From: Mytilus trossulus
Taxonomy: Eukaryota
Assembly (NCBI RefSeq): GCF_036588685.1
Contig: NC_086375.1
Location: 75,826,001-75,890,000, forward strand
Direction of reading: 5' to 3'
Length of the DNA stretch: 64,000 nt
Positions within the stretch are counted from its first letter, which is position 1. Every line of letters starts with the position of its first letter. The translations under genes and the position numbers were made by a program. Positions 2,068-45,739 of the stretch are shown here, piece by piece. Under the pieces are notes generated by a model. That model did not search any database. It saw only the letters and a program-made list of their open reading frames with translations, and had not been told where the DNA came from.

Positions 2068-2847
2068 TAGGCCTGTAACTAACTATAACTGACCTTGATC
2101 AGACCTATTACTAACTATAACTAACCTTGATAAGGACTATAACTAACTATAACTGACCTTGATAAGGCCTATAACTAACTATAACTGACCTAGATAAGGC
2201 CTATAACTAACTATAACTGACCTAGATAAGGCCTATAACTAACTATAACTGACCTTGATAAGGCCTGTAACTAACTATAACTGACCTTGATAAGACCTAT
2301 AACTAACTACAACTGACCTTGATAAGACCTATAACTAACTACAACTGACCTTGATAAGGACTATAACTAACTATAACTGACCTTGATAAGGCCTGTAACT
2401 AACTATAACTGACCTTGATAAGGCCTATAACTAACTATAACTGACCTAGATAAGGCCTATAACTAACTATAACTAACCTTGATAAGGACTATAACTAACT
2501 ATAACTGACCTTGATAAGGCCTGTAACTAACTATAACTGACCTTGATAAGGCCTATAACTAACTATAACTGACCTAGATAAGGACTATAACTAACTATAA
2601 CTGACCTTGATAAGGACTATAACTAACTATAACTGACCTAGATAAGGCCTGTAACTAACTATAACTAACCTTGATAAGGACTATAACTAACTATAACTGA
2701 CCTAGATAAGGCCTATAACTAACTATAACTGACCTTGATAAGGACTATAACTAACTATAACTGACCTTGATAAGGCCTGTAACTAACTATAACTAACCTT
2801 GATAAGGCCTGTAACTAACTATAACTGACCTTGATAAGGCCTGTAAC
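2068..2847. repeat. 32-bp minisatellite, about 24 copies, copy of exon 28 end + donor site
   Basis: Unit ccttgataaggcctataactaactataactga. Confidence 0.97.
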
Positions 2848-2921
2848 TTATGGCATCAGTATAAGGATTCTCAATCATGTCTTCTAAATCATCAAAGGTA
2901 TGCAGTATTTCTTCTATTACC
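2830..2921 (-). CDS. MYO16: MYO16-like exon 28 (tail)
   Basis: [31 protein letters not shown]; tttcag / AAG|gtcagt; phase fits exon 27; donor is the first unit of the 32-bp array. Confidence 0.78.
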
Positions 2922-5900
2922 CTGAAAGTATAATTCAACCTCTAAGTTAAAATAATCCAGTTTCTTCTGGTACTCTGAAATAATCCAATGTCTAAATTAG
3001 AATAATCCTATGTTTCTTTATACTTTAAAAAAAAACAAACAACCAAGGTTAAAGTTCTGCAAGTCACATTTTGCAAATTGCTGGATACATTACAAAGCTA
3101 AGTTATATTTAAATACATGAGGGTTGTCTCAAACCTAGATCTCACATTACAAAGGAAATAAAGAGGAAATTCACTTTCAATAAGTTTGTCAACTGAAGAT
3201 AATTGATTTTAACAAAAACTTCCTCAATTTTCATAATTTGGTTAATAAAATGCATTTAAAAACTCTTATCTTCTGAATTTAAACACTAAACATAAAACAA
3301 TAGAACAATGATCTTTCCTCCTTCTAAGATACATCTTATATTAAAGACTTTTTACAGCTTGGTTTACAGAATATTGTATAAAAACAACATAAAATGGTAG
3401 AAAACTATAAAGGATTAAAATTAGTTTAGGTGTTTAAGTCAGATCTGTTATTTCTATCTTTATAGACTCGGGCTGCTTGGCATAATATAAGTTATTGTGC
3501 TTTGACACAACTAACAGGATTATATAGACAGTGTTGAAAATAGTTGATCTTTGAGGATGAAACTCTAAACTCTAAACTTCTACGAATTCAATGCTTTCTA
3601 AATAAAAGAACAGAGTTACAATGTCCCCTGCCTTTCACATAATTTATCTAGACAGCAACTAACACATTGTTTGTTCTTATAAACTTTTTATGAATATCTT
3701 AGAGAAAAGAAGGCTTCAGAGTAAAAACAATTCAGGTTTACAATATAATTAATTATTCCAAGGGGCATAACTCATGAACAAAATGCTAGTTTGATATACA
3801 TGCTAGACAGTTAATTTCATAAGGAACATGTGTGCTAAGTATTAGGTTGATGTAACCAGACTACCTTAAACATAATCTTTCACCTGGTATGGGCAGATGG
3901 AATTACAAACAGACAGTAAAACACAATGCTTCTCTGCTATTGAGGAAGGGTATAAAAAGTTCAGACAAATTCAATTTTCATGATAGAAATACAAAGGATA
4001 TGGGTATCCATCCATAGCTCAAATCATAGTACCGATACATGCACAGAAAAAAATACAAATAAAAGCATAGACACTTAGCTTTTATTGCTATTCTTTATCT
4101 TAAAATTACAGAGGCCTTCAACACAGAGCAAACATGCTCTCATCTCACAGCAAGTTTAAGACAGATTTTACAAAGAGTAAGTTCTGCTCATTTCAGAATG
4201 AAGGAAGGACATAGAAATGAAATAGCATACATAGGGAGCACTATATGCTCAGTTGCCTTAGCTACCTCATGGTGGGGTTGTGAGAATGGAATAAATATAA
4301 ATAATTCCATTTAGAATTGAAAATCTTGAAAACCTGCCACGTTATTCACAAAATATATAACTACTAAATGTGATCACAGGTTATACTGATGTGTTCATGA
4401 ACAGCAAGTATTTTTATCAGTAAATTTTTCAGGGAAAAGGGGCACTGTCCAAAAACTATTAGTAAAAATTAATATGTTTTTCCTAATGAATTTTCTGATT
4501 TATTGTTACAAAACCTTTGCTGTATGAACCAATTCAATTAATCATTGAAGTGTCATATCTTAAATAATTTTATGGAGACCTTTTTCAAATCAAAACTAGG
4601 ATGGGTGGACAAACACATGCATAATTTTACAAAAAACACAAGCCTAACTATAAACAAGATTGCACACGCTGAAATGTCGCGCCTTCTTTACTAATCATTG
4701 ATTTTATGTTAATAGTCTAAGTATAAAGCTTTATTACAACTGTCACATAAAACTTAACATTAACCAAGATAACTAAATAAAGACCAATGAACCATGAGAA
4801 TGAGGTCAATGTCAGATGAACCATGCCAGGCAGACATATTAACGTTAAAGACACCCTTGTAGATTTCGAAAAAGAGTAGGCTAATGCCGCTACAAGGCAG
4901 CACTCGCACCCACAAAGTGGAAAGGGATTAATATAAGTTGCAAAACTTGTTTCCCAATCCACGATAAATAAATATGTTTAAACTATATACAGCTAACAAT
5001 GCTTCCATACAACAATTATAGTTGACCTATTACTTAGAGTTTAAGAAAAATAGACCAAATCACAAAAACTGAACACTGCATGATCAATGAACCGTGAAAA
5101 TGAGATCAAGGTCAAAGAAAACCTGTGCCACTAACATATAGATCATAAAATATTTCTATACACCAAGTATAGTTGACCTTTGGCTTATAGTATTAGATAA
5201 AGAGACCGAAACTCAAAAACGTAACTTTGACCACTGAACCATGAAAATGAGGTCAAGGTCAGATGACATCTGCCCGCTAGACATGTACACCTTACAATCA
5301 TTCCATACAACAAATATAGTAGTCCTATTGCATAAAATATGAGAATAACAGACCAAAACACAAAAAATTAACTATAACTACTGAACCATGAAAATGAGGT
5401 CAAGGTCAGATGACACCTGCCAGTTGGACATGTACACCTTACAGTCCTTCCATACACTGAATATACTAGCCCTATTGCTTATAGTATCTGAGATATGGAC
5501 TTGACCACCAAAACTTAACCTTGTTCACTGATCCATGAAATGAGGTCGAGGTCAAGTGAAAACTGTCTGACGGGCATAAGGACCTTGCAAGGTACACTCA
5601 TATCAAATATAATTATCCTATTACTTATAATAAGAGAGAATTCAACATTACAAAAAATCTGCACTCTTTATTCAAGTGATCACTGAACCATGAAAATGAA
5701 GAACATTGGACATGTGACTGATGGAAACTTTGTAACATGAGGCATCTATATACAAAGTATGAAGCATCCAGGTCTTCCACTTTCTAAATATAAAGCTTTT
5801 AAGAAGTGAGCTAACGCCGCGGCCGCCGGATCACTATCCCTAAGTCGAGCTTTCTGCAACAAAAGTTGCAGTCTCGACAAAAACTAAATATTTCAATAAA

Positions 5901-8900
5901 CCACAACTCATAAACAACCAATTTTCAATTAAACATCAGACGGCTTGGACGTTATATTGTGGAGATCCACAGTTGGAAGTGAAAATATAGAAATGTTTGA
6001 TGATATTTATTTTCAATCAAACAGAATACAAAATTGAGGTCACTGTAGTTTTGGCTCAATTTGCATTTCCACTAATTGATAAACTTTGAGATTAAGTTAC
6101 TTTTAACTCTTTGGTTCTTCAATAAGTTGAACCTCAGTTCTAATTCTTATTAATAACAACATGGAGTACAACTTACTGATTACTTGGCTCAGCTGACTTT
6201 TTAGCTCTATCTTCTGCTTGTTTTTTAGCTCTATCTTCTGCTTGCTTTTTAGAAGACTCTGCTTGCTTCTTAGTAAATTCTGCTTTCTTCTCTTTGTAAA
6301 CTTGTATTGCTTTATGTCTCCTGACAGCTGAAATAATTGTGAATGACTTTAAACATACAATTTAATAAAAGCAGAAAAATAATTTTGAAGATACAAAGAA
6401 GGAATGCAACATAATAAATCCTCCATAGAAGTCTGTTCACAGGTTATACTGATGTTTTCATGAACAGCAAGTATTTTTATCAGTAAATTTTTCAGGGAAA
6501 AGGGCCACTGTCCAAAATCTATCAGTAAAAATAATATGATATGACACATTCCCCATTTCCTTTCTCAATTTTATTCTGCTGTTATTATGTAGAATGTAAC
6601 AAATGAAAATTTGGACTGGTAAATAAAGGGTTGCAAAGATTTTTATAGATGAAAAATGATCAGTCTCTTCAAGCTGCATTTGTGTAACAGAATTATTGCG
6701 GTATGTTCAATAGTTTCTTGAGGTTGATGAGAAGGAACATACCATGAAAAGGTACACAGACTTGTTTCTGAAGATAAATATACAAGTCTCCTGCCATCTC
6801 ATTGAGTTCAACTAAAGATATTTCAAATAAATAAAAAGAGTGATATGTTTTGGTTTTTTTCTTCATGGATTTCTTTATTGGTGTATTTGTTGATATACCT
6901 GTAACTGATATCCTCTTACCTGACTGGGATATGACAAGTTTCTTTAGTATTTCATCATTGGCTTTATCAACATTACATACAACACCGTCTGTCATGAATA
7001 CTTTGGTTTTACCAATCTGAAATACAATTGCTGGTGTCATATGGCATTTTGAACCTCATGGAAAATTGACCCTGTCCTAATACATGTACTGCTATGGTAA
7101 AATCCCCCCCAAAAAACCCTTATATGGAAAATTGCCCCCCCCCCCTGGTAAATTGAACCCCTACATAATTACTAGAACATTATACATAATATTAAGGCTC
7201 ATCAATCATTGAAAATCAGACATACAAAAAGGGGAGGTAAATATTTCATGAAAGGAAAAAAATACCCTGGTTTGGTATATGTGCTCTGAACATACTGAAT
7301 GAAGACTTTACCAACAAAACTTAATTCAAAATACTTATTGAAGCATTTTGACTAAACCATGTATCTGGAATGCTTTGGTTATTTGATATCATGACTTAAA
7401 TTTACCATGGTAATAAAGGGGCAGTGGCAAAGTTATCATGACTCAGTGTAATTGTAAAAACATCTTCAAAATATGATTTTATATGTACCAAATATTAGTT
7501 AAGGTATCAAAACTTTACAAATAATTTGAAATATTTTTTTTTTTTAAATTAGAGGTGTATGGACAATGGTTATTAAATATAATTACTGTTGGTATGGGCA
7601 AGTATGAGCTAAATGAACAATAACATATCAACAGTGACCAAGTTCAATATTTTAAAACGACAGTTGAACAATATAAAAAAGGTTGTGTCACTGTTTTATT
7701 TGCAAAATAGTATCCAAACAATCATAACAAGTATGAGAATTTTCGTTAAACAGTCTTAAAAACATAGTTGACACTCGGTGAAATTGCAGTAGTAATTACA
7801 CCTTATATAAGAATGCCAGCTTTTGATTGGCTGATAGCCAGTGTATTTTTCGCATATTCTAACATATTTTCCTCATTTCAAACGGATCTGCCTTTTTTCA
7901 CCACTGCCAGTGAATATGCCTCAAATACCATGGTACATGTATTTGCCATTTTGGATATTCCTTTTTTACCCTTGCGAGCATCTTCCCGTCTTTTTTTTCG
8001 GATATGACGTTACATAAAGACAGTGCGAACACGTATACGTACCTGTATAGTTCCTGCGGTATATTTTATGACAGTACTTGTCCTCAAATAAATATTTCCT
8101 TTTCCTAGTACAGAGAGTTTAAATTAAAATTTATTCGGTGTAATTAAACAGATATATCATGTTATGGAGGGTATTTGCAAAAAATACAAGTCTTGGGACA
8201 AAATTTCCCTTGCCTAGCGGCTCGGGAAATTTATGTCCATCAACTTGTATTTTTCGCAAATACCCCTCCATAACATGATATATCTGTTCAATAGTCCCAA
8301 AAAGTCAAAATTACTTTACTTTGGTTAATTTAGTAAATGATGTAACTTATATGACCTACGTTTTTTTTTCAATCTATGTCATGCTCTGTGCTAAAACATT
8401 TACTTAACAATATCCAGAGCAGTATGTGTTGACCTTTATGTTAATCTAATCAATATTAAATCTATTGTTATCACATCTCAGTTATACATATGATAAACAA
8501 ACTCTGTCATATTACCTGATATCCATCTTTTTCACTGATCACACAGAATTTGAACATTTCTTTACATTTTTCAACGTCAGGTATCATAGAGTGGGAAGGT
8601 AAACAAGACAACATCAAAGCTTTATATCTGAAAATACAACCAGTCAGGTATCATAGGGAAGGTAAACAAGACAACATCAAAGCTTTATATCTGAAAATAC
8701 AACCAGTCAGGTATCATAGGGAAGGTAAACAAGACAACATCAAAGCTTTATATCTGAAAATACAACCAGTCAGGTATCATAGGGAAGGTAAACAAGACAA
8801 CATTAAAGCTTTATATCTGAAAATACAATCAGTCGGGTATCATAGGGAAGGTAAACAAGACAACATCAAAGCTTTATATCTGAAAATACAATCAGTCGGG

Positions 8901-11900
8901 TATCATAGGGAAGGTAAACAAGACAACATCAAAGCTTTATATCTGAAAATACAATCAGTCAGGTATCATAGGGAGGGTAAACAAGACAACATTAAAGCTT
9001 TATATCTGAAAATACAATCAGTCAGGTATCATAGGGAAGGTAAACAAGACAACATTAAAGCTTTATATCTGAAAATACAACCAGTCAGGTATCATAGGGA
9101 AGGTAAACAAGACAACATCAAAGCTTTATATCTGAAAATACAATCAGTCAGGTATCATAGGGAGGGTAAACAAGACAACATTAAAGCTTTATATCTGAAA
9201 ATACAATCAGTCAGGTATCATAGGGAAGGTAAACAAGACAACATCAATGCTTTATATCTGAAAATACAATCAGTCAGGTATCATAGGGAAGGTAAACAAG
9301 ACAACATCAATGCTTTATATCTGAAAATACAATCAGTCAGGTATCATAGGGAAGGTAAACAAGACAACATCAAAGCTTTATATCTGAAAATACAATCAGT
9401 CAGGTATCATAGGGAAGGTAAACAAGACAACATTAAAGCTTTATATCTGAAAATACAATCAGTCAGGTATCATAGGGAAGGTAAACAAGACAACATTAAA
9501 GCTTTATATCTGAAAATACAATCAGTCTGGTATCATAGGGAAGGTAAACAAGACAACATCAAAGCTTTATATCTGAAAATACAATCAGTCAGGTATCATA
9601 GGGAGGGTAAACAAGACAACATTAAAGCTTTATATCTGAAAATACAATCAGTCAGGTATCATAGGGAAGGTAAACAAGACAACATCAATGCTTTATATCT
9701 GAAAATACAATCAGTCAGGTATCATAGGGAAGGTAAACAAGACAACATCAAAGCTTTATATCTGAAAATACAATCAGTCAGGTATCATAGGGAAGGTAAA
9801 CAAGACAACATCAATGCTTTATATCTGAAAATACAATCAGTCAGGTATCATAGGGAAGGTAAACAAGACAACATCAATGCTTTATATCTGAAAATACAAT
9901 CAGTCAGGTATCATAGGGAAGGTAAACAAGACAACATCAATGCTTTATATCTGAAAATACAATCAGTCAGGTATCATTGGGAAGGTAAACAAGACAACAT
10001 CAATGCTTTATATCTGAAAATACAATCAGTCAGGTATCATAGGGAAGGTAAACAAGACAACATCAATGCTTTATATCTGAAAATACAATCAGTCAGGTAT
10101 CATAGGGAAGGTAAACAAGACAACATCAATGCTTTATATCTGAAAATACAACTTGAATTAATGGTCAAAGCAAAAAACCGAATGATTTAAATCTATCAAG
10201 TAAAGCTGATAACAGATATGTTGAATGTCATTAATTCAACATTCTCTTTCCTTCTATTATTGTAGTTTCATAATAAAACCCATTAAAAAAGAGACAAAGC
10301 AGAATGAAGATATGTATCTTTCAGGCTTGTTTTTCATGAAATGTTTTCTTATGTATTCTTTAATCTCAAGTGTTAGAAAACTTCTCTCTACATGTCATCA
10401 CTACATACCTACTGACAAAGTCATGAAACTTGATCCTGTAAGGATATCCAAACTTCTTTATTTTGATTGTCTCACTGATACCAGTATATCTCAGTTGTGC
10501 TAGAACATATTCTGGTATAAATGTCATAGCTGCCTTTGTAGTATTTGGTTTCAAACATCTAATTATATGTGGTGTAGAGGACTGGACCTTGATCATCAAT
10601 TCTGATAAGGAACACTGAAATAGATACATTAATTCTAATAAGGAACACTGAAATGGATACATTAATTCTGATAAGGAACACTGAAATAGATACATTAATT
10701 CTAATAAGGAACACTGAAATGGATACATTAATTATGATAAGGAAGACTGAAATAGAGACATTAATTCTGATAAGGAACACTGAAATGGATACATTAATTC
10801 TGATAAGGAACACTGAAATAGATACATTAATTCTAATAAGGAACACTGAAATAGATACATTAATTCTAATAAGGAACACTGAAATGGATACATTAATTAT
10901 GATAAGGAACACTGAAATAGATACATTAATTCTGATAAGGAACACTGAAATAAAGACATTAATTCTGATAAGGAACACTGAAATAGATACATTAATTCTA
11001 ATAAGGAACACTGAAATGGATACATTAATTCTGATAAGGAACACTGAAATAGATACATTAATTCTGATAAGGAACACTGAAATTGATGCATTTAATTTTA
11101 AGGAACACTGAAATAGATACATTAATTCTAATAAGGAACACTGACATGGATACATTAATTCTGATAAGGAACACTGAAATAAAGACATCAATTCTGATAA
11201 GGAACACTGAAATGGATTCATTAATTTTGATAAGGAACACTGAAATGGAGACATTAATTCTGATAAGGAACACTGAAATAGATACATTAATTCTGATAAG
11301 GAACACTGAAATAAAGACATTAATTCTGAGAAGGAACACTGAAATGGATACATTAATTCTGATAAGGAACACTGAAATAGATACATTAATTCTAATAAGG
11401 AACACTGAAATGGATACATTAATTCTGATAAGGAACACTGAAATAGATACATTAATTCTAATAAGGAACACTGAAATGGATACATTAATTCTGATAAGGA
11501 ACACTGAAATAGAGACATTAATTCTGATAAGGAACACTGAAATGGATACATTAATTCTGATAAGGAACACTGAAATAGATACATTAATTCTAATAAGGAA
11601 CACTGAAATAGATACATTAATTCTAATAAGGAACACTGAAATGGATACATTAATTATGATAAGGAACACTGAAATAGATACATTAATTCTGATAAGGAAC
11701 ACTGAAATAAAGACATTAATTCTGATAAGGAACACTGAAATAGATACATTAATTCTAATAAGGAACACTGAAATGGATACATTAATTCTGATAAGGAACA
11801 CTGAAATAGATACATTAATTCTGATAAGGAACACTGAAATTGATGCATTTAATTTTAAGGAACACTGAAATAGATACATTAATTCTAATAAGGAACACTG

Positions 11901-14900
11901 ACATGGATACATTAATTCTGATAAGGAACACTGAAATAAAGACATCAATTCTGATAAGGAACACTGAAATGGATTCATTAATTTTGATAAGGAACACTGA
12001 AATGGAGACATTAATTCTGATAAGGAACACTGAAATAGATACATTAATTCTGATAAGGAACACTGAAATAAAGACATTAATTCTGAGAAGGAACACTGAA
12101 ATGGATACATTAATTCTGATAAGGAACACTGAAATAGATACATTAATTCTAATAAGGAACACTGAAATGGATACATTAATTCTGATAAGGAACACTGAAA
12201 TAGATACATTAATTCTGATAAGGAACACTGAAATTGATACATTTAATTCTGATAAGGAACACTGAAATAGACATTAATTCTCATAAGGAACACTGAAATA
12301 GAGACATTAATTCTGATAAGGAACACTGAAATAGAGACATTAATTCTGATAAGGAACACTGAAATAGAGACATTAATTCTGATAAGGTACATTGAATTAG
12401 ATACATTAACTTGGGGTCTCATTGGGGGGGTTCTGATCCCAGATCCCGCTCACTGTTTTCTTAGATTCCCGTATCCCACTTACACTATGTACATAAGCAA
12501 TTCTCAATTTTTTTGTCATTTCCCAGGTCCCGCAAGACCTCATTTCCCGTTTTCACGACACAATAATTTGACTTTCACGTTTCCCTCTTACGAAAAATTG
12601 GCAATCACGCGTCACGCTTAAACCCCAATGAGACCCACTTAACTAACATAGCTGTTGGTTTGATGTCTAACTGACATTAAAGTTGCAAAGGTCTTGAACT
12701 GAAAAACTCAAAAAAACTAAAAACCTAGTGGCTTAAAAGAGCCTGAGTTGATCACTTGAATCAATGTTCATCTTAATCATTATAGCCACTCTCCATCATT
12801 GCTTTTCAAAGTTCCCCAAAAATTATAGCGTTTATGATAAAAGTCAATAACGCAAATCATGGTAATAATTGTTATTTAAGAGCAATAACTCTTTATAGTT
12901 GACTGTTGATTGAAGTCATGTGGACTTATTTACTGATAAATTTTGCTATTTTCTAAATTTATAACTATCAATTATAGTATTCTTGATAATAGGCAAAAAA
13001 ATATAAAAATCGGGAAAATCTTTATTTCACAACCAGAGTAAGTAGATCTCAACATTCCCAACATTTCTGTTTCAGACAGATTTTCTCCGGTTACAGTGAT
13101 TTTCAAGATAATAGACAAAGTGCATTGTACTCCTGTTTTAATCTCAGCCATATCAGCCATGTTCTTTTATGGTAGAAAGTTGTCTATAATATGATTTTAA
13201 TATGTGTATTTTAATGTAATACCAAAATGCTATATAATAATGACATTTGTAACATACCCTAAAATGGTAAGCCATTGTGGCTGGTCCTTTCCTCTCTGAA
13301 GCGGTCATTGGTTTGGCAGGCTGTTTTGTCTGAAAAAAATAATTAAATACTTATCTATAAAAGAATGGGAAAAAATAATATGACAAAACTCACATGATTT
13401 ACTACTAAGCCTACAGTAGAGGATACTTTAACTTGAAATACCTCTCTTGTAATATTTTTTGTATATTGCAGGTTTCTTGGTATTAGAGATGTATACATTA
13501 TTGTTTATCTTTATATAGAGTATTGAAGTATTCAAGTCATAGTAACCTATATTTTGTGAGATGCTAATTCTCCCTAGACATTTCTGTACAATACGTTATA
13601 TGATTACATGACACCTAATAACTGAGATATAAACTAAGATATAAACTAAGTTAAAAAGCAATATTGCTAATAAGTTTAAAAAGACTTAAAAAAAATGATG
13701 GTTATGTGGCCATCTTGATCTTATGGAAGTTTCTCAACACAAATTAGTATTAAAAGTAGGTCATATACAGTTTTGGAGCACACACAGACAGGAATGCTAA
13801 GAATATCAAGACAATCCCTTCTGTTTACTAGTTTTGTTATCTTGCCTACCTTGTCTGCCTTTCCACCTCTCAGTTTCTTAAAGAACTCAAATGGAGATTT
13901 AGATGTATTTCTCCTGGATCTTTGTTGTCTGGCACTGGGGGCTAATGAACCTGTTCTTGTTATATTTGACTGAAACAAATCCTTTATCAACAGACTGTTA
14001 CTCGCTGAAAATATGGTAAAACATTAACTTATCACTTATATAGTAGCCTAACATTATTTCTAACTTGTAAGGACAACTAAAGGATAACATACAGTTTACC
14101 CTTTTCACTGAACTAGTACACATTCTTATTCAAGAGCCAGCTGAGGCCCACCTCTGGGTGTGGTATTTGGTCCAAGGACACAGTTATCGTCCTTTGGTTT
14201 TCGTTGTCTACGAATATAGTCCCTAGTGTAAACAGTGTATAACTTGCATGTTTTATTTGATACACTTTCCAAATTTATTTCTTGATATTAAATGCATGAA
14301 ATATTAAGTAGGGGGATGTAATTACATGTCAAAAAACTTTTGGTGCTGAATCTTTATGTTAAGTAGTGAATTGGTCCAGTTCTAAGAGGTCAAATTTTAT
14401 CACGTCTGACTCTGTCAAACTGAATTTTACACCCCCTTAACACAGAATTGTCAATATTTTGAGTTAGAGCTGGTAGAAGTTTCTATAATTTTGATAACAT
14501 TTGTCTCACTGGTAGTACACTACACTGTAAAAATCTTTTTGAGAAAGAGCAGGTGTGATTTTTTTAATTTGAATTTATTGTCTTGAATTTAATGTCTAAA
14601 AGAAGTGCACTACGAAATAACTGTGTTCTCGGGCCATTTTCTCAATGGATTAAAGATCCATCGGTGGCCTTCAGTTATTTTCTGCTCTTTGGTAGCATTG
14701 TTGTCTATCTGACATCTTCCCCTTTTCCATTCTCAATTTTATTCAACTGTGGACAAAAGTCTGTGCAGTATTCCAATCATCAAATGTGGAGTCAAAAAAA
14801 GTTATTTACTATATATAATCAACAACTTTTCAATCCAATAAACAATTTATTTTTTTATTACAAATTTAATTTATTACGCTATCAGATTTTACTTTATGAT

Positions 14901-23900: not shown

Positions 23901-26900
23901 AATTTTTGTGTTATAAGCCAAAAACAGTATTTTACCCCTATGTTCTATTTTTGGCTATGGCGGCCATTTTGTTTGGTGGACCGGGTCACCGGACACATTT
24001 TTTGAACTAGATACCCCAATAACAATTGTGGCCAAGTTTGATTGAATTTGGCCCAGTAGTTTCAGAGGAGAAGATTTTTGTAAAAGATTACTTTAATTTA
24101 AGAAAATGGTTAAAAATTGACTATAAAGGACAATAACTCCTTAACGGGTCAACTGGCCATTTCAGACATGATGACATATTTGTATATCTAACTTTGCTGA
24201 ACATTATTGCTGTTTACAGTTTATCTCTATCTATAATAATATTCAAGATAATAACCAAAAACTGCAAAATTTCCACAAAATTACCAATTCAGGGGCAGCA
24301 ACCCAACAACAGGTTGACCGATTCATCTGAAAATTTCAGAGCAGATAGATCTTGACCTGATAAACATTTTTATCCCATGTCAGATTTCCTCTAAATCCTT
24401 TGGTTTTTGAGTTATAAGCCAAAAACTGCATTTTACCCCTATGTTCTATTTTTAGCCATGGTGGCCATCTTGGTTGGTTGACCGGGTCACGCCACACATT
24501 TTTTAAACTAGATACCCCAATGATGATAGTGGCCAAGTTTGGTTCAATTTGGCCCAGTAGTTTCAGAGGAGAAGATTTTTGTAAAAGTTAACAACGACGA
24601 CGGACGACGGACGCCGGACGACGGACGATGACGGACGCCGGACGCAAAGTGATGGGAAAAGCTCACTTGGCCCTTCGGGCCAGGTGAGCTAAAAATGAGA
24701 GCTTTTGTACCACATAAAATAATGTTTAAACAGATATTCCCTATACTCTGACCTTCACATCTAAGACAAGCAACTTTACCTATGAGCATTAACAGACTGC
24801 AGATGGAATAAATTAAATTCTTCTGGTGTTAGTCCAGAAAACATCCAATAAAATATGTGAAAGTTTCTTTCTCCTTCATTCTGGTAGACAACACGAGACT
24901 TCTCCAACAAAAACTCTGTTAATTTGGCTACAGAAGAAAGATATCATAAACATACAAGTCATTCATAAGTATGTATTTTTGTAACATGTTCTGTTTGATC
25001 TCATTTCATTTATACAGATACCAAACACATAACTTTTATTCATTTTGTGGAATTTTGTGTAAATTATTTTTTTCTATTGAAAAATAAGAAATCCCTTGTT
25101 CTAATTTTACACATTCAATTGCAAATCATTTAAAAACAAGAATGTGTCCAAAGTACATGGATGCCCCACTGGCACTATCATTTTCCATGTTCCATGGACC
25201 GTGAAGTGGGGTCAAAAGTCTAATTTGGCTTTAAAATTAGAAATATCATATCATAACAATCAAGTGTACTAAGTTTCAAGTTGATTGGACTTCAGCTTCA
25301 TCAAAAACTACCTTGACCAAAAACTTTAACCTGAAAATCCCACTTTCATTTTATTTGTTCGGTTGACCATGAAATTGGAGTCAAAAGTCTAATTTGGCTT
25401 TAAAATTAGATATATCATATCATAAGCAACAAGTGTACTAAGTTTCAAGTTGATTGGACTTCATCTTCATCAAAAACTACCTTGCCCAAAAACTTTAGCC
25501 TGCGGACGAACAAATGGACGAACGAACAGACGAACGAGCAGACGGACGAACGAATGAACGGAGCCACAGACCAGAAAACATAATGCCCCTCTACTATCAT
25601 AGGTGGGGCATAATTACAATACAATATACAGGCCCGTAGCCAGGAATTTCCAAAGGGGGGTTCGTTGGACTCACAAACTCGACTTTAACAGTCACAATTC
25701 GAACAGAACATTGCCTTTAACAGTCCTTATTTGTTTTCAAGGGGGGGGGTTCATCCGAACCCCCCTGGCTACGGGTATGATATAGTCCTCAATATATACA
25801 ATTTAAAGTAGGCCTCAACTGTAAATGCATGAAAGCATAAAGGAACAACAAAAAAAAGCATATTTTAACTACTAGCTGGTATACTTATTTAGTTACTGGT
25901 ATAAGAGCATAGAAAATGTAACTAATATATAACTAGATATAAGAAGATGCAGTATGAGTGCCAATGAGACAACTCTCCAACCAAGTAAAAGTAAACCATA
26001 ATATTACAAAATACGGTCTTCTACACGGAGCCAACTGTCCAATAAGCTGTCAAATATCTCTACAGAATTCTTACCTCCAACTAATTTTCCCTGCTGACTA
26101 AACATTAATTCAATAAATTTAGCAAAGCGACTAGAATTATCATTTATCATCGTCTGTGCATTCCCAAAAGCTTCTAACAAAGGATTCACCTAAAAACATC
26201 AAGATCATATCTAAATTATGCATGCAGTCATTTGTGACCAATATTTAATCAACAAACTGTATTATCCTGCTATTCAAATATATTATAAGTTACATTCAGA
26301 AATGTTTATGTGCATTTATTATTACAATTGTTCAACAATAGACACAAAATGTGAAAATATATTGTTGAATATCTGGAAATACTGTGGATTCATTATTATT
26401 TGTTTGGATACTAACAGTAGATTATATGTGTGTGTAGGGTCACCATGAATTTAAATGTTCAAAGAATTGCAAATTTTCTATGGGAATGTATGCAAACATT
26501 TTAAGAACCACAAAATCAATATCCACGAAAATAGAAGTTTTCGTAGATCAAATAGTTCTATGAACAGCTACCTCATTGCCAGTAACTATAGATTGTATAA
26601 TTACCTGATTAATTTTGTTATTCAAGTTACCCTCTTCACTGCCAGTTACCCTAGCCAGATGTTGGACCAATAGTTTACATGTTTCAGACTTTCCTGCTCC
26701 ACTTTCACCACTGATGACACAGCACTGGGAGGTTTTATCATTCCTCATTGAACCATATGCCTCCTCAGCTGTGCAATAAAGATGAGGAGGTAGGGAGGTT
26801 AAATCTCCTGTCATGTGATACAAAGTAGAAACCTACAATAGAAAGGAGTTGAATGTTTGATTAATAGTTGCTAAACAACCAGCAGCAAATATCCATTTTT

Positions 26901-29900
26901 AATTTTAAATGTTGGTATTTAATCCACATGAAGAAATAAAATTCTACCTAGACACAGCATCATCACTCCATTCCAACCAATCTTTGTTCTTACCATTGAA
27001 TGTCTAGCACTATGAGAAACATCTGATACCAATTATTTAGAAGCCTTTGGTTTGATTCTGTTTGTGATTGAACACATGACCTCAAATAATCCTATTTGAC
27101 GTGAAAATATATGGTCTTCTATTCTTCCCATTATAAAAACTATTGCAATACTGGGTCAATACAGAGTTATTGGTCTTGTTTATGTCTTGTGACCTTGACA
27201 TTGCCTGTTAAAACATATAGTGTTTTTGAGTGTTCCCTTGATATCTTTTTTCTAAGAAAACTGCTGTTTTAAAATTTCCAAACTTTTAGTAACATTATTT
27301 TACAAGGATGTTTCCGCTGTGCTACACATACAAGTACTGAAGCACAACTCCGGGTCTGGTATTATCTCGCTGCATTGGTGGCCTTCAGCTGTTATTTGCT
27401 CTTTGGTCGGGTTGTTGTCTCTTTGACAAATTCCCCATTTCTATTATTTTACAGATGAAGAAAAATGTTGACCGATGACAAATAAATATATCAATAAATT
27501 GTATTTACATAAAAATGTATTACTTGATTGATTCATTGGTGTTTAATGCCACTGTTAACTTTATTTTGCTTTATGGTTACTTAGTGGAGTAAGCAGGAGT
27601 GCGAGGAGAGGAAAACTGTTAATTAGCACTCCTGCAATGTGGGGATTCAAACTCAAAATGGGCTCAGTATTGTCAGGCTAGTGATAGCTGACAACTTAGA
27701 CCACACAGCCACTGAGATCCCTATATTTTTAAAATAGAGACTGTGAACCTTTATTTCTGGTACCATGAACTTATATATATGGTACCTGTTTGGCATATAT
27801 TGATAGTTCTTTGAATGGATTAACAGCAAGCAGTACATCACCAATCTTTGTCTGAAATAACATTGTAAATTCTTTACTGATTATGATAACATCTTCTCAT
27901 CATTATTTCAAATGAAGACAAAACAAAAGAAATCTACATCAACAAAGATTGCCATGTCCCATAATTGATTCCAGGTTTTGGTGGGGTTTGTGTTTCTCAT
28001 TCTTTAGTTTTCTATGTTGTGTCATGTATGCAATTTTTTATCTGTTTGTCTTTTTCTTTTTTAGCCATGGCATTGTCAGTTTATTTTCAATCTATTAGTT
28101 TGACTGTCCCTCTGATATCTTTTGCCCCTCTTTTACACAGCACTTTTTAATTCTTTCATTTAACTTGATATACCTGGACATCTTGATTCTACCTTCAGAG
28201 CTTCTATTTATATACTTACATATATCTGGTCATCTTTATATCTGTTTTCAATGTGTGACAGTACACTTTCTTCCGATATATCACTTAAATTCTTTAAATT
28301 ATCTGTGTCTCTTACTTTTGGTAGCTGAATCTAATATAATTGATTTACATCTATTAGTTACATATTGTGAAAATGTACATATAATAATCAACTTTTCTGT
28401 TCTTTACTATTTACAGTTTTTGCTTAAGAGTAATAAAATTTCTATTTTTATATGTGAAGTTACACATACAAGATCATACCAGAAGTTATCTTGTTATATA
28501 AGTGTCTCATAAGTCAAATTTATGACTGGGTATTGATTGTTTTATTGTATACTGTGATTTGTAAATATTGTCAATCAATATGTGACACTATAATAAAATA
28601 TATATTTATTTGTTATAATTGAACTACAATAAGATCAGTGCTGTTACACAAAACTATGTTAGTCTGATAGTTTAGTCATTTAATAGGATTGACAAGTAAG
28701 AGGAGAATTTCATATTAAAACTCCATTTTTATCTTTAAATCTGCAATTTATTGTGATTGATTTAAACCTGAATTGTATTGTATCAGTATACCTATACTCT
28801 AATTCGTTTTAATAATAACAATAATGCATCTAGCAAGCAACACAAGAAAACAATCTAAAGACATACATACTTGAGTATAACAGCTGTAAAGATATATTTA
28901 ACCAAATTTTCATTTTATTTGTGCATGTTTCAAAGACATTTGAAGTATGGGAACTTTTTCTTAATGTATGTAGAATTAGTGGTGAAGATGGCTATGTCCT
29001 AGTTAATTTAGTGATGTCTAAGGAAAGAACAGGGAAAATGTGCAAACTTTCCAAAAATGAAAACTTAATGCTGTTGTATTTTCAACATTTAAACAAAACC
29101 AATACTGGAATGAAAAGGCAGAGACATGCTGAGATAATCTTTCTATATTATGCATTTGACAAGTAATATACTGAATAGCAGCACAAAATTGAATAATTTT
29201 TGTGTCATTCATTTTTTAACACTTGATAAAGCATATAAGATGAAAACGACAAAAAGTAGCTATGCATGAAAAAACAAAGTGGACAATAATAATCATCAAA
29301 TGAAATGTTTTAAGGGGAGGTAAAAAATGTGTTCAAGAATGTAGTAAACCCTGTATGTGAGTAAATTTCAAAATCTTAAGATGTGTATTTGTTGAGAAAC
29401 AAATGACATTTAATTTAAGGCACTAGGCACCAAAACATGAAAATCAATAAATTTTCTGCAGCAATCCCTAAAGTGTTGTTGTAATAAGACTTTTTACAAA
29501 ATTTTATATTTGCATTGGCATAGAAGCTTTAATCTCTAAGGGTTCAGATTTAATGATAGAATACAACCAGATGCTCCGCAAGGCGTAGCTTTATACGACC
29601 GCAGAGGTTGAACCCTGAACGGTTGGGGCAAGTATGGACACAACATTCAAGCTGGATTCAGCTCTAACTTTGGATTGTGATTAAATAGTTGACACAGCAT
29701 AGGTTTCTGACACAGAATAAATGTGTTCTAATGAACTTAAAATTTTTGTTTTCTCTTAGAGCAATTCACTATGCTGTTGAATATTAATCCTCTCAAAAAA
29801 ATGTTTGAAGAAATTTTCTTTTTATTTATGAAATTTCAAATGAGAAAAATTGAACCCAATTTTTTAATCACATCCCCCTTTCCCTTATTCTAAAACTAAT

Positions 29901-32900
29901 CTCAATTAAAATATTCTAATGGAGTTTGCAACAATAACTACTCATTTAAATACATCATAAAATATTAAGATGTAAAAAAACTGCTTGTTATCACTGAATG
30001 GTAAAGATTATTTAAATTTATCAGTTGGTAGTAAAAAGTGAATATACATTGTATATTGTATATAACAAAGATTTAAGTTGATTCTGGACAAAGAAAGATA
30101 ACTCCAATTAAAAAAAATTCTTGCTATTGCACAATATTGTGCAATAAGATATTTCTTGCTTACTATTCTGGACAAAGAAAGATAACTCTAATTAAAAAAA
30201 AAATGCTATTTCACAATATTGTGCAATTAGATATTTCTTGCCATTGCACAATACTGTGCAATTGAAAAGACTTGCTATTGCACAATACTTAATATAATAA
30301 TTTTAGATCCTGATTTGGACCAACTTGAAAACTGGGGCCATAATCAAAAATCTAAGTACATGTTTAGATTCAGCATATCAAAGAGGCCCAAGAATTCAAT
30401 TTTTGTTAAAATCAAACTTAGTTTAATTTTGGACCCTTTGGACTTTAATGTAGAAAACAGGACCAAAAATGAAGAATCTACATACACAGTTAGATTTGGC
30501 ATATTAAAGAACCCCATTTATTCAATTTTTGATGAAATCAAACAAAGTTTAATTTTGGACCCCGATTTGGACCAACTTGAAAACTGGGCCAATAATCAAG
30601 AATCTAAGTACATTTTTAGATTCAACATATCAAAGAACGTTTAATTAAAGAAAGTTTAATTTTGGACCCTTTGGACCTTAATGTAGACCAATTTGAAAAA
30701 GGGACCAAAAGTTGAGAATCTACATACACAGTTAGATTCGGCATATCAAAGAACCCCAATTATTCAATTTTGATGAAATCAAACAAAGTTTAATTTTGGA
30801 CCCTTTGGGCCCCTTTTTCCTAAACTGTTGGGACCAAAACTCCCAAAATCAATAACAACCTTCCTTTTATGGTCATAAACCTGGTGTTTAAATTTCATAG
30901 ATTTCTATTTACATGTACTAACTTTATGGTGCGAAAACCAAGAAAAATGCTTATTTGGGTCCCTTTTTGGCCCCTTATTCCTAAACTGTTGGGACCTAAA
31001 CTCCCAAAATCAATCCCAACCTTTCTTTTGTGGTCATAAACCTTGTGTCAAAATTTCATAGATTTCTATAACTTAAACTAAAGTTATAGTGCGAAAACCA
31101 AGAAATGCTTATTTGGGCCCTTTTTGGCCCCTTATTCCTAAAATGTTGGGACCAAAACTCCCAAAATCAATACCAACCTTCCTTTTATGGTCATAAACCT
31201 TGTGTTAAAATTTCATAGATTTCTATTCACTTTTACTAAAGTTAGAGTGCGAAAACTAAAAGTATTCGGACGACGACGACTACGACAATGACGCAGAAGA
31301 CGATGCCAACGTGATAGCAATATACGACGAAAATTTTTTCAAAATTTGCGGTCGTATAAAAAATAACCAATTATTAATGGTAGTCAAATGTAATTGATAA
31401 CCTCCATGTAAAACTAAAAATCAATAAAAAACATCAGTCGGTCTCATATTCAAAAATTGTATACAGAGATTCTGTATTTTACAGAAAGATTTATAATTAA
31501 GAAGTATTCTAAAGGTGAATAGTAGGATAAGGTGACTGAGCGTTAACCTTATTTACCTTGGTAATGTCAGCAGTCTTCCAGATTTTAGAAACATAAACTT
31601 CTTCTTCATCACTGTCATCATTCTTTACATTCCTTTCTTCAGAGAAACATTTGTCCTCAATGTTTATTCTTCCAACAGTTTGTTCTGTTTTACTTTTTTG
31701 TCCACCAAAATCTTTGCCATTCATTAACATATACTGCCTTCCTTCAAGAAGACTATCCATTTTTCCTACACTTGAATGGCGGGGTTTCCTAAAAATTATC
31801 ATTTTCAAGTAGATAAAGAACAAGTTTTACTCTTCCTTTTTATTTTTTAAAACAATGAAGTATGTGATGATCTTCCACAGGAAATAAGACAAAATATCAA
31901 CTACTAAGTAAATAAATTATTTGTTTATATTTTTTCTTTTCTTTTAGTGTTGTTTGTTTGCAAAAATTTCATATTGAAAATAAACTGCAATAACACAAGT
32001 GTAAATAAACAAAAAGTGTACACATGCTCAATTGTATCACCTGTCTTACTTAAAATAAAGTTCATGTTGAAAATCTGTAATATGAAGGTTTTACTACAAG
32101 TATCAATGATCCACGAAAATTAAGTCATGGCCCCATGAAAATTAAGTTACGGTCAGATGCCAGACAGACATGTACATTCAGTAATCATTCCATAATCCTA
32201 TTGATTTTAGTACCAGAGAAACAGATCAAACCACAAAATCATAATATTGACCAATGAACCATGAAAATGAGGTTAAGGTAATATGAAACATGCCAGTCAG
32301 ACATGTTCACCTGACAATCATTCCATACACCAAATATAGTGACCTTATAGCCTATAGTACTTGAGAAGTAGACAAACCACACATACTAAAGTTAACATTG
32401 TTTTAAACCATAAAAATTGATGTCAAGATCAGATCAAAGCTGTCAGTCCAACATGAACACCTTACAACCATTCCATAAACCTAATATAGTTGACCTACTT
32501 CTCATTGTATTTGAAAAACAAACCAAAATATAAATGCTTAATATAGACCATTAAACAATGAATGAGGTCAGGGTCAAATGACACCAGCCAAACAGACCAG
32601 TAAATCTTACAGTCATTCAATATACCAACTACTGTGGATTCTTTTATTTTTCTGGGTATCAAGTTAAGTAGATTGAGTAAAACTGGCAACTCTGTGGATT
32701 TTTGATTTGTGGTTCACCTCCACACACAAAACCTTCTGACAATTGGTATCCAACGAATAATAATAAATCTACAGTAGATTTGACTTTTCTTGTTTTTACT
32801 TTAATACTCGTATTTACAATAATTCAAAGTTTTTCACACAACCCATATGTTCTATTTTTGCCATGGTGGCCATATTGGTTTGCAGGCAGGATAGTTGTAC

Positions 32901-35900
32901 AAAAAACTAGAAATGCTTAGGGGGGTCTTGGCTAAATTTTGATGCAATTGGCCAGGAAGATTCAAAGGAGAACAATAATTCCAAAATGAGTTTTTTTATA
33001 GAAAATATATCATTTATATTATTTAATGAATGTATTTAAAAAGAATTTTAATTGTAAACTTTTTATAGTTGAAAGAGGAAAATTAAATGATCTATTCTCA
33101 CCTCTAAAACATTCCAAAGATACAAAATCATATAAAAAAAAAACTTACACTGTTTTACTGTTAATTCTTATTATACCCCCTCCTTGTAGGCCATCATCTT
33201 CATCTTCTACATCATCATCATCTTCACCATCTAGTTCTGATGATTCAGAATCTCTGTTAGTTTTTCTTTCTCTCTTTAGAAGGAGAGCTTTGATCTCATT
33301 ACTTCCTGCTAAAGCTGATGGTTTATTTCCTTCGTTGTCTAAAGCATTTAAATCTGCTTTTTGCTTGATCAAAGTTTTGACTGTTTCCAACTGCAAATGA
33401 AAGCTAAATCTTACTCCTGATGTTCAAACATCGGACTTATTTTCAACCATACTTTCTGGGTATCATTTTCCTATGGACATAATGCTTTTACCTTTATAAC
33501 AACAGTACACACAATGGTTCATATAACCTATAAGTATGTGTGCAAGACGTACACTTTACAACCTCAAAGAAAGACCACCATTCCAAAGTTGACCTTGTTA
33601 ACTAGTTTATTTTGAGAATTGAGTTTTAATGGCAGATCTTTGATTGTTTTATAGTAATACATATATATATTAAATGTCAGAGCAATGGTCTTTGAGGGTA
33701 TTTTCATCCTATCTGCATCTTTACTCCAAGATATCCTATTGTAGATGATTTCTGTATTTGAAACTGGCTCAAATAAATTCTAACAGTAAGCAGGATGCTA
33801 ATGTTTCCATTGAGTCAACAAGAAATGAGCAAAACACAAAACTCAAGTAACAAAGTAAACAATTTCAAGAAAAGATTTACAATACATGAACTGACCTGAT
33901 TAAATCTAGAAGCTACATGCAACGGGGTCCAGTACAGGTTATCTTTAATATTTATGTCTGCACCATGTTTCATAAGCAACTTTATGACTTTTTTGTACCC
34001 ATTAGCACAGGCTATGTGTAACTGAAAAAAACCAAGTAAACCAAATGGTTAACAAAAAAAGCCAAGTGCAAAAACTTTGTGACAAAATACATTTAACAAA
34101 ACATTAATAGCTAAGCTAAAACTTTGAAGTTAACTTTATTCTATTGTAATTTAAGCTTTACAAGTTGCACTTTATTCCATTGTTAATTCAGCTCAGACTT
34201 ACTAGTGACACTTTATTCCACTGTATTATATTGTTAGTTAAGACTAAAAAATGACACTTTATTCCATTGTTAACTAAGCTAAGACTTACAAGTGACACTT
34301 TATTCCATTGTTATTTATGCTCAGACTTACAAGTTTCACTCTATTCCATTGTTAATTAAGCTAAGACTTACTAGTGACACTATGTTCCATTGTAAATTGA
34401 GCTCAGACTTACAATTAGTAGTTTATTCCATTGTTAGTTAAGCTAAGACTTTAGTTCATTGTTAATTAAGCTCAGACTTACAAGTTTCACTTTATTCCAT
34501 TGTTAATCAAGCTCAGACTTACAAGTTACACTGTATTCAATTGTTGATTAAAGCTCAGACTCACTAGTGACACTTTATTCCATTGTTAGTTTTAATCTAA
34601 GACTTAAAAGTTACACTGTATACCATTGTTAATTAAAGCTCAGACTTACAAGTGACACTTTATTCCATTGTTAGTTTTAATCTAAGACTTAAAAGTTACA
34701 CTGTATTCCATTGTTAATTAAAGCTCAGACTCACTAGTGACACTTTATTCCATTGTTAGTTTTAATCTAAGACTTAAAAGTTACACTGTATACCATTGTT
34801 AATTAAAGCTCAGACTTACAAGTGACACTTTATTCCATTGTTAGTTTTAATCTAAGACTTACTAGTGACACTTTATTCCATTGTTAATTAAGCTCAGACT
34901 TACAAGTGACACTTTATTCCATTGTTAGTCTTAATCTAAGACTTAAAAGTTACACTTTATTCCATTGTTAATTAAGCTCAGACTCACTAGTGACACTTTA
35001 TTCCATTGTTAATTAAGCTCAAACTTACAAGTGACACTTTATTCCATTGTTAGTTTTAATCTAAGACTTACAAGCTACACTGTATACCATTGTTAATTAA
35101 TCTCAGACTTACAAGTGACACTTTATTCCATTGTTAGTTTTAATCTAAGACTTAAAAGTTACACTGTATTCCATTGTTAATTAAAGCTCAGACTCACTAG
35201 TGACACTTTATTCCATTGTTAGTTTTAATCTAAGACTTAAAAGTTACACTGTATACCATTGTTAATTAAAGCTCAGACTTACAAGTGACACTTTATTCCA
35301 TTGTTAGTTTTAATCTTAAGACTTACTAGTGACACTTTATTCCATTGTTAATTAAGCTCAGACTTACAAGTGACACTTTATTCCATTGTTAGTCTTAATC
35401 TAAGACTTAAAAGTTACACTTTATTCCATTGTTAATTAAGCTCAGACTCACTAGTGACACTTTATTCCATTGTTAATTAAGCTCAAACTTACAAGTGACA
35501 CTTTATTCCATTGTTAGTTTTAATCTAAGACTTACAAGCTACACTGTATACCATTGTTAATTAAGCTCAGACTTACAAGTGACACTTTATTCCATTGTTA
35601 GTTTTAATCTAAGACTTAAAAGTTACACTGTATTCCATTGTTAATTAAAGCTCAGACTCACTAGTGACACTTTATTCCATTGTTAGTTTTAATCTAAGAC
35701 TTAAAAGTTACACTGTATACCATTGTTAATTAAAGCTCAGACTTACAAGTGACACTTTATTCCATTGTTAGTTTTAATCTAAGACTTACTAGTGACACTT
35801 TATTCCATTGTTAATTAAGCTAAGACTTACAAGTGACACTTTATTCCATTGTTAGTCTTAATCTAAGACTTAAAAGTTACACTTAATTCCATTGTTAATT

Positions 35901-38900
35901 AAGCTCAGACTCACTAGTGACACTTTATTCCATTGTTAATTAAGCTCAAACTTACAAGTGACACTTTATTCCATTGTTAGTTTTAATCTAAGACTTACAA
36001 GCTACACTGTATACCATTGTTAATTAAGCTCAGACTTACAAGTGACACTTTATTCCATTGTTAGTTTTAATCTAAGACTTAAAAGTTACACTGTATTCCA
36101 TTGTTAATTAAAGCTCAGACTCACTAGTGACACTTTATTCCATTGTTAGTTTTAATCTAAGACTTAAAAGTTACACTGTATACCATTGTTAATTAAAGCT
36201 CAGACTTACAAGTGACACTTTATTCCATTGTTAGTTTTAATCTAAGACTTACTAGTGACACTTTATTCCATTGTTAATTAAGCTCAGACTTACAAGTGAC
36301 ACTTTATTCCATTGTTAGTCTTAATCTAAGACTTAAAAGTTACACTTTATTCCATTGTTAATTAAGCTCAAACTTACAAGTGACACTTTATTCCATTGTT
36401 AGTTTTAATCTAAGACTTACAAGTTACACTGTATTCCATTGTTAATTAAAGCTCAGACTCACTAGTGACACTTTATTCCATTGTTAGTTTTAATCTAAGA
36501 CTTAAAAGTTACACTGTATACCATTGTTAATTAAAGCTCAGACTTACAAGTGACACTTTATTCCATTGTTAGTCTTAATCTAAGACTTACTAGTGACACT
36601 TTATTCCATTGTTAATTAAGCTAAGACTTACAAGTGACACTTTATTCCATTGTTAGTTTTAATCTAAGACTTAAAAGTTACACTTTATTCCATTGTTAAT
36701 TAAGCTCAGACTTACAAGTGACACTTTATTCCATTGTTAATTAAGCTCAGACTTACAAGTGACACTTTATTCCATTGTTAGTTTTTATCTAAGACTTAAA
36801 AGTTACAATGTATTCCATCGTTAATTAAGCTCAGACTTACAAGTTACACTTTATTCCATTGTTAATTTAGCTCAAACTTACAAGTGACACTTTATTCCAT
36901 TGTTAATTAAGCTCAGACTTACAAGTGACACTTTATTCCATTGTTAGTTTTAATCTAAGACTTACAAGTTACACTGTATTCCATTGTTAATTAAGCTCAG
37001 ACTTACAAGTGACACTTTATTCCATTGTTAGTTTTAATCTTAGACTTACAAGTTACACTTTATTCCATTGTTAATTAAGCTCAGACTTACAAGTGACACT
37101 TTATTCCATTGTTAATTAAGCTCAGACTCACTAGTTACACTTTATTCCATCGTTAATTAAGCTCAGACTTACAAGTGACACTTTATTCCATTGTTAGTTT
37201 TAATCTAAGACTTACAAGTTACACTGTATTCCATTGTTAATTAAGCTCAGACTCACTAGTGACACTTTATTCCATTGTTAGTTTTAATCTAAGACTTACA
37301 AGTTACACTGTATTCCATTGTTAATTAAGCTCAGACTTACAAGTGACACTTTATTCCATTGTTAGTTTTAATCTTAGACTTACAAGTTACACTTTATTCC
37401 ATTGTTAATTAAGCTCAGACTTACAAGTGACACTTTATTCCATTGTTAATTAAGCTCAGACTCACTAGTTACACTTTATTCCATCGTTAATTAAGCTCAG
37501 ACTTACAAGTGACACTTTATTCCATTGTTAGTTTTAATCTAAGACTTACAAGTTACACTGTATTCCATTGTTAATTAAGCTCAGACTTACAAGTGACACT
37601 TTATTGTCATTGATTTTGTTAGGGGATCCACCATTACATAAATGATCATCAACATCCTTGTACATCTGACGAGGTTTCCATAACTGAATTTCTTTTTTCC
37701 TATTAGCATCCAATCCTATATAAATTATAAAGATAACAGATACACAGAAAGTAAACAGAAAGTGACTTCAGGTAACATTCTTAGGTCACGCCTATTTGGG
37801 ATCTATTTTTGTTAATAAAGTTTTTTTCATTATTATATGTATGTCATAATTTTCATATTATCATGAAAATTTTCATTTAAATAAATATCTTCATTGATAT
37901 TTTTTTTCCTGAGTTCATTCACCTTTGTTTTTTTAAAGAGATGTTAACAATATATTTTTAAGGTGTTCTTACAAAAATGTTGCTTTCATTTGTACTACAT
38001 GCACTAAAGGGGTTAAAACACAAATCTGAAATATCTATCTTTAAGTTTTGTGAAAGTGCATGAATGCTTGAGCATGAATGATACATTAAAACAAATTAGA
38101 TCATATTGAAGTCATGTAAATGAAAAAATACCCATTTAAAAATAGTATGCATATCAACATTATTACATAAATTAAAGGAAAAATTGGAGAGAAATACAAT
38201 GAATTTATTGGAGATCAAAAGGAAGTATCATTATATGCATGCCGTCATCTGGTTTTCACTCAATACTAATAAAGAAAGTCAATTTATTTTCTGTTCAAAA
38301 CAGGAAGTTCTAGTTTTAAACCTTATAAAGATAGGAACATCTAAGTTTTCACTCATTTCACCAACATGATATGAAGTATCATTTTGTAAATCCCAGTTAT
38401 GCATGATTCTCTTTTCTGGAAAATTGTGACAAATTATACCTATTTATTGATACTGTGCTGTTTGTTAACAAAATCCATCTATCTACCATTAATGAACATT
38501 ACAAAATTTCTTCTTACTTAATACATATTCTACACAGAGTAAGGTTTTTTCCTACACATCATTAAAAACATTTTGGACAAAAACCAATAATAACAACTAG
38601 TTTTATAGTAAATCTAAAGTTGTACAAAAGTAAATATTAAAACAAGAGTGCACAGCCTGACATATCTCGCTTGCTTAATTATCATGATTGAACAGGTGCT
38701 GATAATGTGTAATACATGTATGAAGATAACCATATATAATGTTTCACTATAAGTTTCCAATAAAGTTAACATTATCAATGATCAATAGAAATTACCTCAA
38801 AGTCAGATGAACCCTGCCAAACAAATGTGTTCACCTTACAATCATACCATATACCAAATATAGTTAACCTATTCTCAATTACAATGTATCTGAGAGACAG

Positions 38901-45700: not shown

Positions 45701-45739
45701 TTTAACACATCATTATGATGTTCCAATTTTCATAGACTA

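Follow-up and report, generated by a model that had tools for sequence, protein, structure and literature searches.

Why should four minisatellites that share no sequence, all within one gene, each start at an exon-intron junction? The question is raised by a 64,000-nt stretch of the mussel Mytilus trossulus (contig NC_086375.1, positions 75,826,001 to 75,890,000; hereafter the window), which corresponds to C3:75826001-75890000 of the 1.30-Gb chromosome-scale assembly that was searched. Within this AT-rich animal DNA (GC content ~0.31), a myosin-XVI-like gene carries four large tandem arrays, here called A to D. We interpret them as four independent minisatellites of the type named 'mirage' in amphioxus, where they were described in the globins BflGb6 and BflGb9 (Ebner et al., PMC3087553): junction duplications that were amplified within introns and that are probably tolerated by-products rather than devices. 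We put the probability of this reading at about 0.65. The array feature itself is real and non-random. The repeat type is already known; what stands out is its scale, its occurrence at acceptors and how often it seems to recur in this genome. Junction minisatellites set tens of identical splice sites competing inside a native gene, and here one essential motor gene holds 24 and ~80 donor copies together with 25 and 55 acceptor copies.

Anatomy of the four arrays

To define the junctions, exons were mapped by exon-by-exon tblastn using the closest ortholog, P0004, as query, and every search was run exon by exon. The host gene is laid out as follows.

2830..44395, minus strand: coding span of the myosin-XVI-like gene; ankyrin-repeat exons N-terminal and motor domain after them; ~28 exons inside the window, with the tail running past the window start

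Pfam analysis of single exons identified Ank in exons 3 and 6 and Myosin_head in exons 11 and 24, and a genome-wide profile scan with PF00063 matched the window at 10372-10623 and 26590-26802. The best full-length relatives (P0004, P0008, P0017, P0027) carry an ankyrin region of ~400 residues before the motor. Judged by its predicted domain order, N-terminal ankyrin repeats and then a motor, the gene is a class XVI-like myosin. When ortholog P0017 was searched against the whole genome for tail exons, the matches were dominated by ankyrin repeats.

Tandem Repeats Finder (TRF) delimited the arrays as follows.

2069-2848, minus strand: array A, 32-bp unit, 24.4 copies, 93% match; runs downstream into the intron
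8593-10151, minus strand: array B, 63-bp unit, 24.7 copies, 97% match; runs upstream into intron 24
10594-12409, minus strand: array C, 33-bp unit, 55.2 copies, 91% match; runs upstream into intron 23
34158-37605, minus strand: array D, 41-43-bp unit, 82.5 copies; occupies 96% of intron 5

These coordinates, periods and copy numbers agree with those of the initial annotation, and TRF detected no other repeat with at least 5 copies in the coding span 2830-44395. Two arrays are of donor type (A and D) and two of acceptor type (B and C), and they occupy 68-96% of their introns. The unit of array A consists of 17 nt from the end of exon 28 and 15 nt of intron (a GTCAGT or GTTAGT donor plus 9 nt), while that of array D combines 15-21 nt from the end of exon 5 with 20-26 nt of intron including GTAAGT. 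On the acceptor side, the array B unit joins 12 nt of intron end (ttgtattttcag) to ~48 nt of exon 25 start and 3 nt of filler, and the array C unit joins 12 nt of intron end (tatctatttcag) to the first 21 nt of exon 24. Mutual alignment scores of the four consensus units were no better than those of shuffles, which upholds the earlier claim of four independent junction-derived arrays.

The exons that meet the arrays, with their splicing partners, are given below.

37591..37715, minus strand: exon 5, ankyrin region; ends ...AATAAAGTGTCACTT at 37591; its donor, CTT|GTAAGT, forms the first array D unit; P0004 residues 182-235
33896..34021, minus strand: exon 6, ankyrin repeat; acceptor partner of exon 5, starting at 34021; the ortholog reads ...SL|LHI..
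13258..13329, minus strand: exon 23; ends ...AYHFR|gtatgt; donor partner of the exon 24 acceptor; P0004 residues 986-1008
10409..10614, minus strand: exon 24; starts at 10614 after ...tatttcag and ends ...FVS-AG|gtatgt; Myosin_head profile positions 565-630
8516..8627, minus strand: exon 25; starts at 8627 after ...tattttcag; the last, functional copy of array B; P0004 residues 1077-1103
2830..2921, minus strand: exon 28, tail region; ends at 2830, where the probable donor AAG|GTCAGT forms the first array A unit; weak ortholog match to P0004 residues 1190-1209

The sequence, ortholog P0004 and the Pfam profile all bear out the proposal that the units start at splice junctions and combine an exon edge with a splice signal. 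Three of the four array junctions are fixed by P0004, which reads uninterrupted across exons 4-5-6 and 23-24-25-26. The exon-28 donor is probable, as judged from its AAG|GTCAGT consensus, a stop that an unspliced reading would meet after three codons of the unit, and a Q-G-Q read-through shared with P0004. Phase 0 at the exon 23/24 junction is fixed by the exon 23 donor; the opening of exon 24, CSLSELM, corresponds to the conserved F-R-x-S-L-x-x-L-M helix of the motor, and the exon 24/25 join gives R-YKALM..., the ortholog counterpart being RYKSLAL. A search of exon 24 against a 5.8-billion protein set returned one genomic fragment only (P0151, from a related species), which holds no junction information. 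Ortholog alignment and frames read by eye showed that the coding frame is preserved, with the terminal copy continuous with the real exon and the other copies intronic; that the arrays extend into introns only and leave the reading frame intact, as had been proposed, is supported by P0004 reading across the junctions.

Splice dinucleotides are almost entirely retained in three of the arrays (A, 24/24 GT; B, 25/25 AG; C, 54/55 AG) and in most units of the other (D, 65/81 GT), where 15 units constitute a TTAAGT subfamily. Fourteen units of array A (AAG|GTCAGT) and 44 units of array D (CTT|GTAAGT) are pseudo-donors identical to the authentic site. Array D also shows higher-order periods of 84 bp and 463 bp (TRF), and its distal units are decayed. 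Such structured variation, with subfamilies, higher-order periods and decayed distal units, is that of real minisatellites, and the same architecture recurs at many loci. It is therefore highly improbable that the arrays are collapsed or expanded mis-assemblies, even though tandem arrays are error-prone, a draft genome contained a mis-assembled amphioxus mirage (PMC3087553), and the copy number here could still be wrong.

As a separate observation, AATAAA lies ~10 nt upstream of GTAAGT in every array D unit (~80 times, including window 37560-37605), placing a poly(A)-signal hexamer beside a U1 site.

The history of array B can be read from its units. Native intron sequence is still found upstream in the most distal unit, but at the start of interior units its place is taken by exon-derived TATGATACCTGAC followed by TGA or TGG; together these imply that the array was seeded by simple tandem duplication spanning the acceptor. 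A 4-nt ACTC is present in the functional copy alone and absent from all 24 decoys, whose frame therefore runs into an in-frame TGA. Concerted evolution within the array, combined with purifying selection on one copy, would produce this pattern. Genome-wide, the array B unit was found at its own locus only, which favors an origin in place, and a search of its inter-unit junction against metagenomes gave 0 matches.

Two other origins were considered and rejected. A transposon or satellite origin of the units conflicts with the single locus of array B and with the conserved motor-domain codons that the units hold. Recruitment of the exon edge from a pre-existing array was rejected for B and C, whose exon parts encode conserved myosin residues.

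Chance, junction bias and arrays at other loci

The initial annotation considered that four arrays out of four at junctions was unlikely to be due to chance. We modeled chance as a unit-length seed placed at random among 55 junctions in 41.6 kb; such a seed spans a junction with p = 0.050, 0.097, 0.051 and 0.064, and the four-array product is 1.6e-5. Because the window had been chosen post hoc, replication was sought in other loci. The independent sample comprised 200 kb with ~11 other myosin genes, chosen by Pfam match alone and blind to repeats; repeats were called by TRF, and exon cores were mapped with 38 myosin proteins, giving an incomplete exon map. Among arrays of at least 7 copies, 3/9 touch an exon edge against 0.60 expected (P=0.017), and among all repeats of period 25-120, 5/25 do so against 1.77 expected (P=0.025).

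Genome-wide counts of three motif copies, with the reversed motif as control, point in the same direction on the donor side. AGGTAAGT in three copies spaced 20-50 nt gave 900 matches versus 382 for the reversed motif, a 2.4-fold donor-motif excess, and GGTAAGT in three copies gave 3159 versus 1375; on contig C1, at least 9 donor-motif arrays were present versus 2 in the control. The acceptor motif TTTTCAGG in three copies gave 290 matches genome-wide versus 245 in the control, an excess that is not clear.

Collectively, the association between arrays and junctions is not chance, and some junction-linked bias exists. The earlier statement on chance is thus strengthened by the window probability, the recurrence in the blind sample and the donor-motif counts, but its count of four out of four left out a fifth large array at 44907-47035. 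That array has no proven junction, and the window was picked after the fact; both points favor coincidence, in which arrays fall randomly in introns and one gene is noticed among many windows. Set against the 1.6e-5 for the window, the replication in Pfam-chosen loci and the genome-wide donor-motif excess, this explanation has very little chance of being correct. The junction excess points to a junction-linked bias in the seeding or the keeping of repeats in this genome.

Three further arrays share the donor-side architecture.

L014 6317-7127 (C7:64.70 Mb): 51 bp x16, donor-side; 40 nt of exon (GYPIRVKFPTFIER) plus GTATGTGGCTA; unit in frame without a stop
L007 7559-7972 (C10:32.77 Mb): 60 bp x7, donor-side; 53 nt of exon (EASVLHNLRARYSNSLIY) plus GTAAGTT
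L015 9492-9731 (C3:77.96 Mb): 79 bp x3, donor-side; 64 nt of exon plus donor

These donor-side units are mostly exon (40-64 nt), with an intron part of just 7-15 nt. Three other arrays lie against or near a junction with no exon sequence and no splice dinucleotide.

L005 2904-3833: 29 bp x32; stops 1-3 nt before the acceptor AG
L014 5033-5110: 39 bp x2; stops 1-3 nt before the acceptor AG
L005 9582-9851: begins 23 nt after the donor

The signal-free abutting arrays of L005 and L014 suggest that the hotspot is positional and not tied to the splice signal. Across junction units, the intron share is always short (7-28 nt).

These features bear on a mutational explanation, in which short tandem duplications at boundaries would be seeded, for example, by polymerase pausing or transcription-replication conflict at splice sites, or by breaks at the edges of exon-bound nucleosomes. 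We regard such a junction-targeted process as a real possibility, though at somewhat less than even odds. It is consistent with the enrichment in the independent sample and in the genome-wide motif counts, with arrays that end 1-3 nt short of an acceptor or start 23 nt past a donor and hold no exon sequence, and with the invariably short intron part of the units. However, no mechanism is identifiable from sequence, the acceptor motif shows no enrichment, the sample is small, and selective retention could also be the cause of the excess. The process is compatible with our interpretation of the arrays as tolerated junction duplications, for which it would supply the missing cause, and the evidence on the junction excess leans toward a positional mutational bias. 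A bolder extension, which we hold more tentatively still, is that the mussel germline may have a transcription-, splicing- or chromatin-coupled mutational process at exon-intron boundaries that seeds tandem duplications far more often there. If such a boundary-aimed process is true, this genome would be a natural laboratory for minisatellite birth, for the choice among dozens of identical splice sites including acceptors, and for intron and exon gain. A mutational cause of the junction excess would bear on minisatellite origin and on junction duplication as a source of new introns and exons.

Precedents, tolerance and possible function

The initial annotation knew of no named system with this layout; the same thing is in fact described as the 'mirages' of amphioxus (PMC3087553, PMC3902484) and as junction-spanning minisatellites of human F7, IFI6, CBS, LMNB2 and PDGFA (PMC1557585). 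Beyond the globins, amphioxus mirages are reported in Adh3 (Canestro, Gonzalez-Duarte & Albalat 2002, as cited in PMC3087553) and in troponin C and PGBD5 (Pavelitz et al., PMC3902484). They occur at both boundaries, carry AG/GT signals, are spliced normally by reverse transcription PCR and undergo concerted evolution, and their origin is called unclear (PMC3087553), as it has been since 2002. As known here from the DNA of one assembly, the mussel arrays A-D show every structural feature of mirages. In both, the unit spans the exon-intron boundary, both 5' and 3' sites are affected, AG/GT is carried, a single copy at one end forms the real exon edge, and concerted evolution operates in the array with boundary units excluded. 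Unlike the amphioxus examples, those described here are in a mollusc, reach 24-83 copies versus 3-6 in the amphioxus globins, and occur four to a gene; in addition, the mussel data suggest an excess across the genome, which in the amphioxus papers is a matter of conjecture.

The human counterparts are variable number tandem repeats, namely the 37-bp repeat of F7 IVS7 and those of IFI6 (6-16) intron 2, CBS IVS13, LMNB2 and PDGFA (Borensztajn et al., PMC1557585). In each, the exon/intron boundary falls within the first monomer, so that identical pseudo-donors come after the authentic donor; arrays A and D are built in this way too. F7, with 5-9 copies, has been used as a model to study how 5' splice sites are chosen; the most upstream donor alone is used, and positional selection of that site has been demonstrated to keep the pseudo-donors silent (PMC1557585). 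The human repeats are isolated, donor-side and of 5-25 copies, whereas the mussel gene has acceptor-side arrays too.

Two other phenomena are related more distantly. Intron gain under the Rogers model (AGGT segment; potato RNA-dependent RNA polymerase, PMC4974935) likewise involves tandem duplication that copies splice signals, but there an exonic duplication makes a new intron, whereas in the mussel the copied segment is a junction that already existed, with no sign of a new intron or exon. Tandem splice sites at short range (NAGNAG and similar, PMC2423196) are likewise repeated competing sites; unlike the mussel arrays, they lie a few nucleotides apart, yield alternative isoforms and are not minisatellites.

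To our knowledge, selection among identical acceptor sites has not been studied, and we know of no selection rule shown for them. Gene predictors in mollusc genomes will be misled by such arrays.

The arrays could have arisen and persisted as follows. A 32-63-bp segment straddling an exon-intron junction would have been duplicated in tandem in place, and unequal exchange or replication slippage would have raised it to 24-83 copies. Coding constraint acts on the exon-continuous copy only, namely the first one in a donor array and the last one in an acceptor array; the remaining copies are intronic, near-perfect pseudo-splice sites. The gene would survive because splice-site choice presumably depends on position, by exon definition and oriented scanning of the kind demonstrated for human F7. 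Nonsense-mediated decay (NMD) would clear most errors, since use of most decoys would lead to a premature stop, which is predicted within 3-15 codons in A, B and D.

Several points weigh against this account. In array C, use of the nearest three decoys is predicted to add 11, 22 or 33 in-frame residues to the motor; these decoys are in frame without a stop, and transcripts using them would thus escape NMD. Which copies take part in splicing is itself inferred. Tolerance alone does not explain the enrichment, because a junction-spanning duplication should harm more than an intronic one. The P values of the independent sample are modest and its exon map incomplete, and the acceptor motif shows no clear excess. 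Furthermore, the near-complete intactness of decoy signals could reflect selection rather than homogenisation.

Under a functional alternative, which takes up the tunable splicing or NMD elements suggested in the initial annotation, the arrays would be kept as putative splice-site decoys or landing pads that adjust messenger RNA yield through NMD, speed splicing, or suppress premature polyadenylation by recruiting U1 or U2AF, with copy number as the tuning knob. The nearly complete set of intact pseudo-sites, the large share of the introns that the arrays fill (four in one gene) and the close succession of AATAAA and GTAAGT in each array D unit are in keeping with it. However, concerted evolution alone predicts intact sites, and the 15-unit subfamily of array D is splice-dead. 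Splicing is normal and pseudo-sites are silent in the amphioxus and human precedents (PMC3087553, PMC1557585), and a decoy role does not explain junction-abutting arrays without a splice signal (L005 2904-3833, L014 5033-5110). We therefore consider such a function unlikely, and prefer the reading of tolerated junction duplications.

Neighboring repeats and genes

The fifth large array, at window 44907-47035, lies just upstream of the first coding exon and has a 47-bp unit in ~40 copies with a 141-bp higher-order period. Read on the plus strand, every unit finishes with a strong acceptor-like ...ccttgacttgtttacag, and the final partial unit stops exactly where a possible plus-strand exon, 47036-47101 (AG|...AAAG|GTAGGT), begins. 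Alternatively, it could be a donor-side array of a minus-strand exon of the 5' untranslated region.

Other features of the window and its comparison loci are as follows.

54132-62271, plus strand: homocysteine S-methyltransferase-like gene, three of whose exons match Pfam PF02574; oriented head to head with the myosin gene and free of large arrays
50797-51348: 49-bp x 11 array with 99-bp higher order, between the two genes; neither end is matched to an exon
15686-16017, 4988-5554, 30314-31256 and L009:2915-3594: low-copy 126-169-bp repeats of another type, interspersed and away from junctions

The low-copy 126-169-bp repeats are probably transposon-borne; the 169-bp unit resembles satellites carried by mussel mobile elements.

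Finally, three public predicted myosins from other organisms (P0044, P0001 and P0120) contain exact tandem duplications of motor segments, and the duplication in P0044 begins at the position that corresponds by homology to the first residue of exon 24 in the mussel gene. One possibility is that the underlying gene models read through junction or exon duplications.

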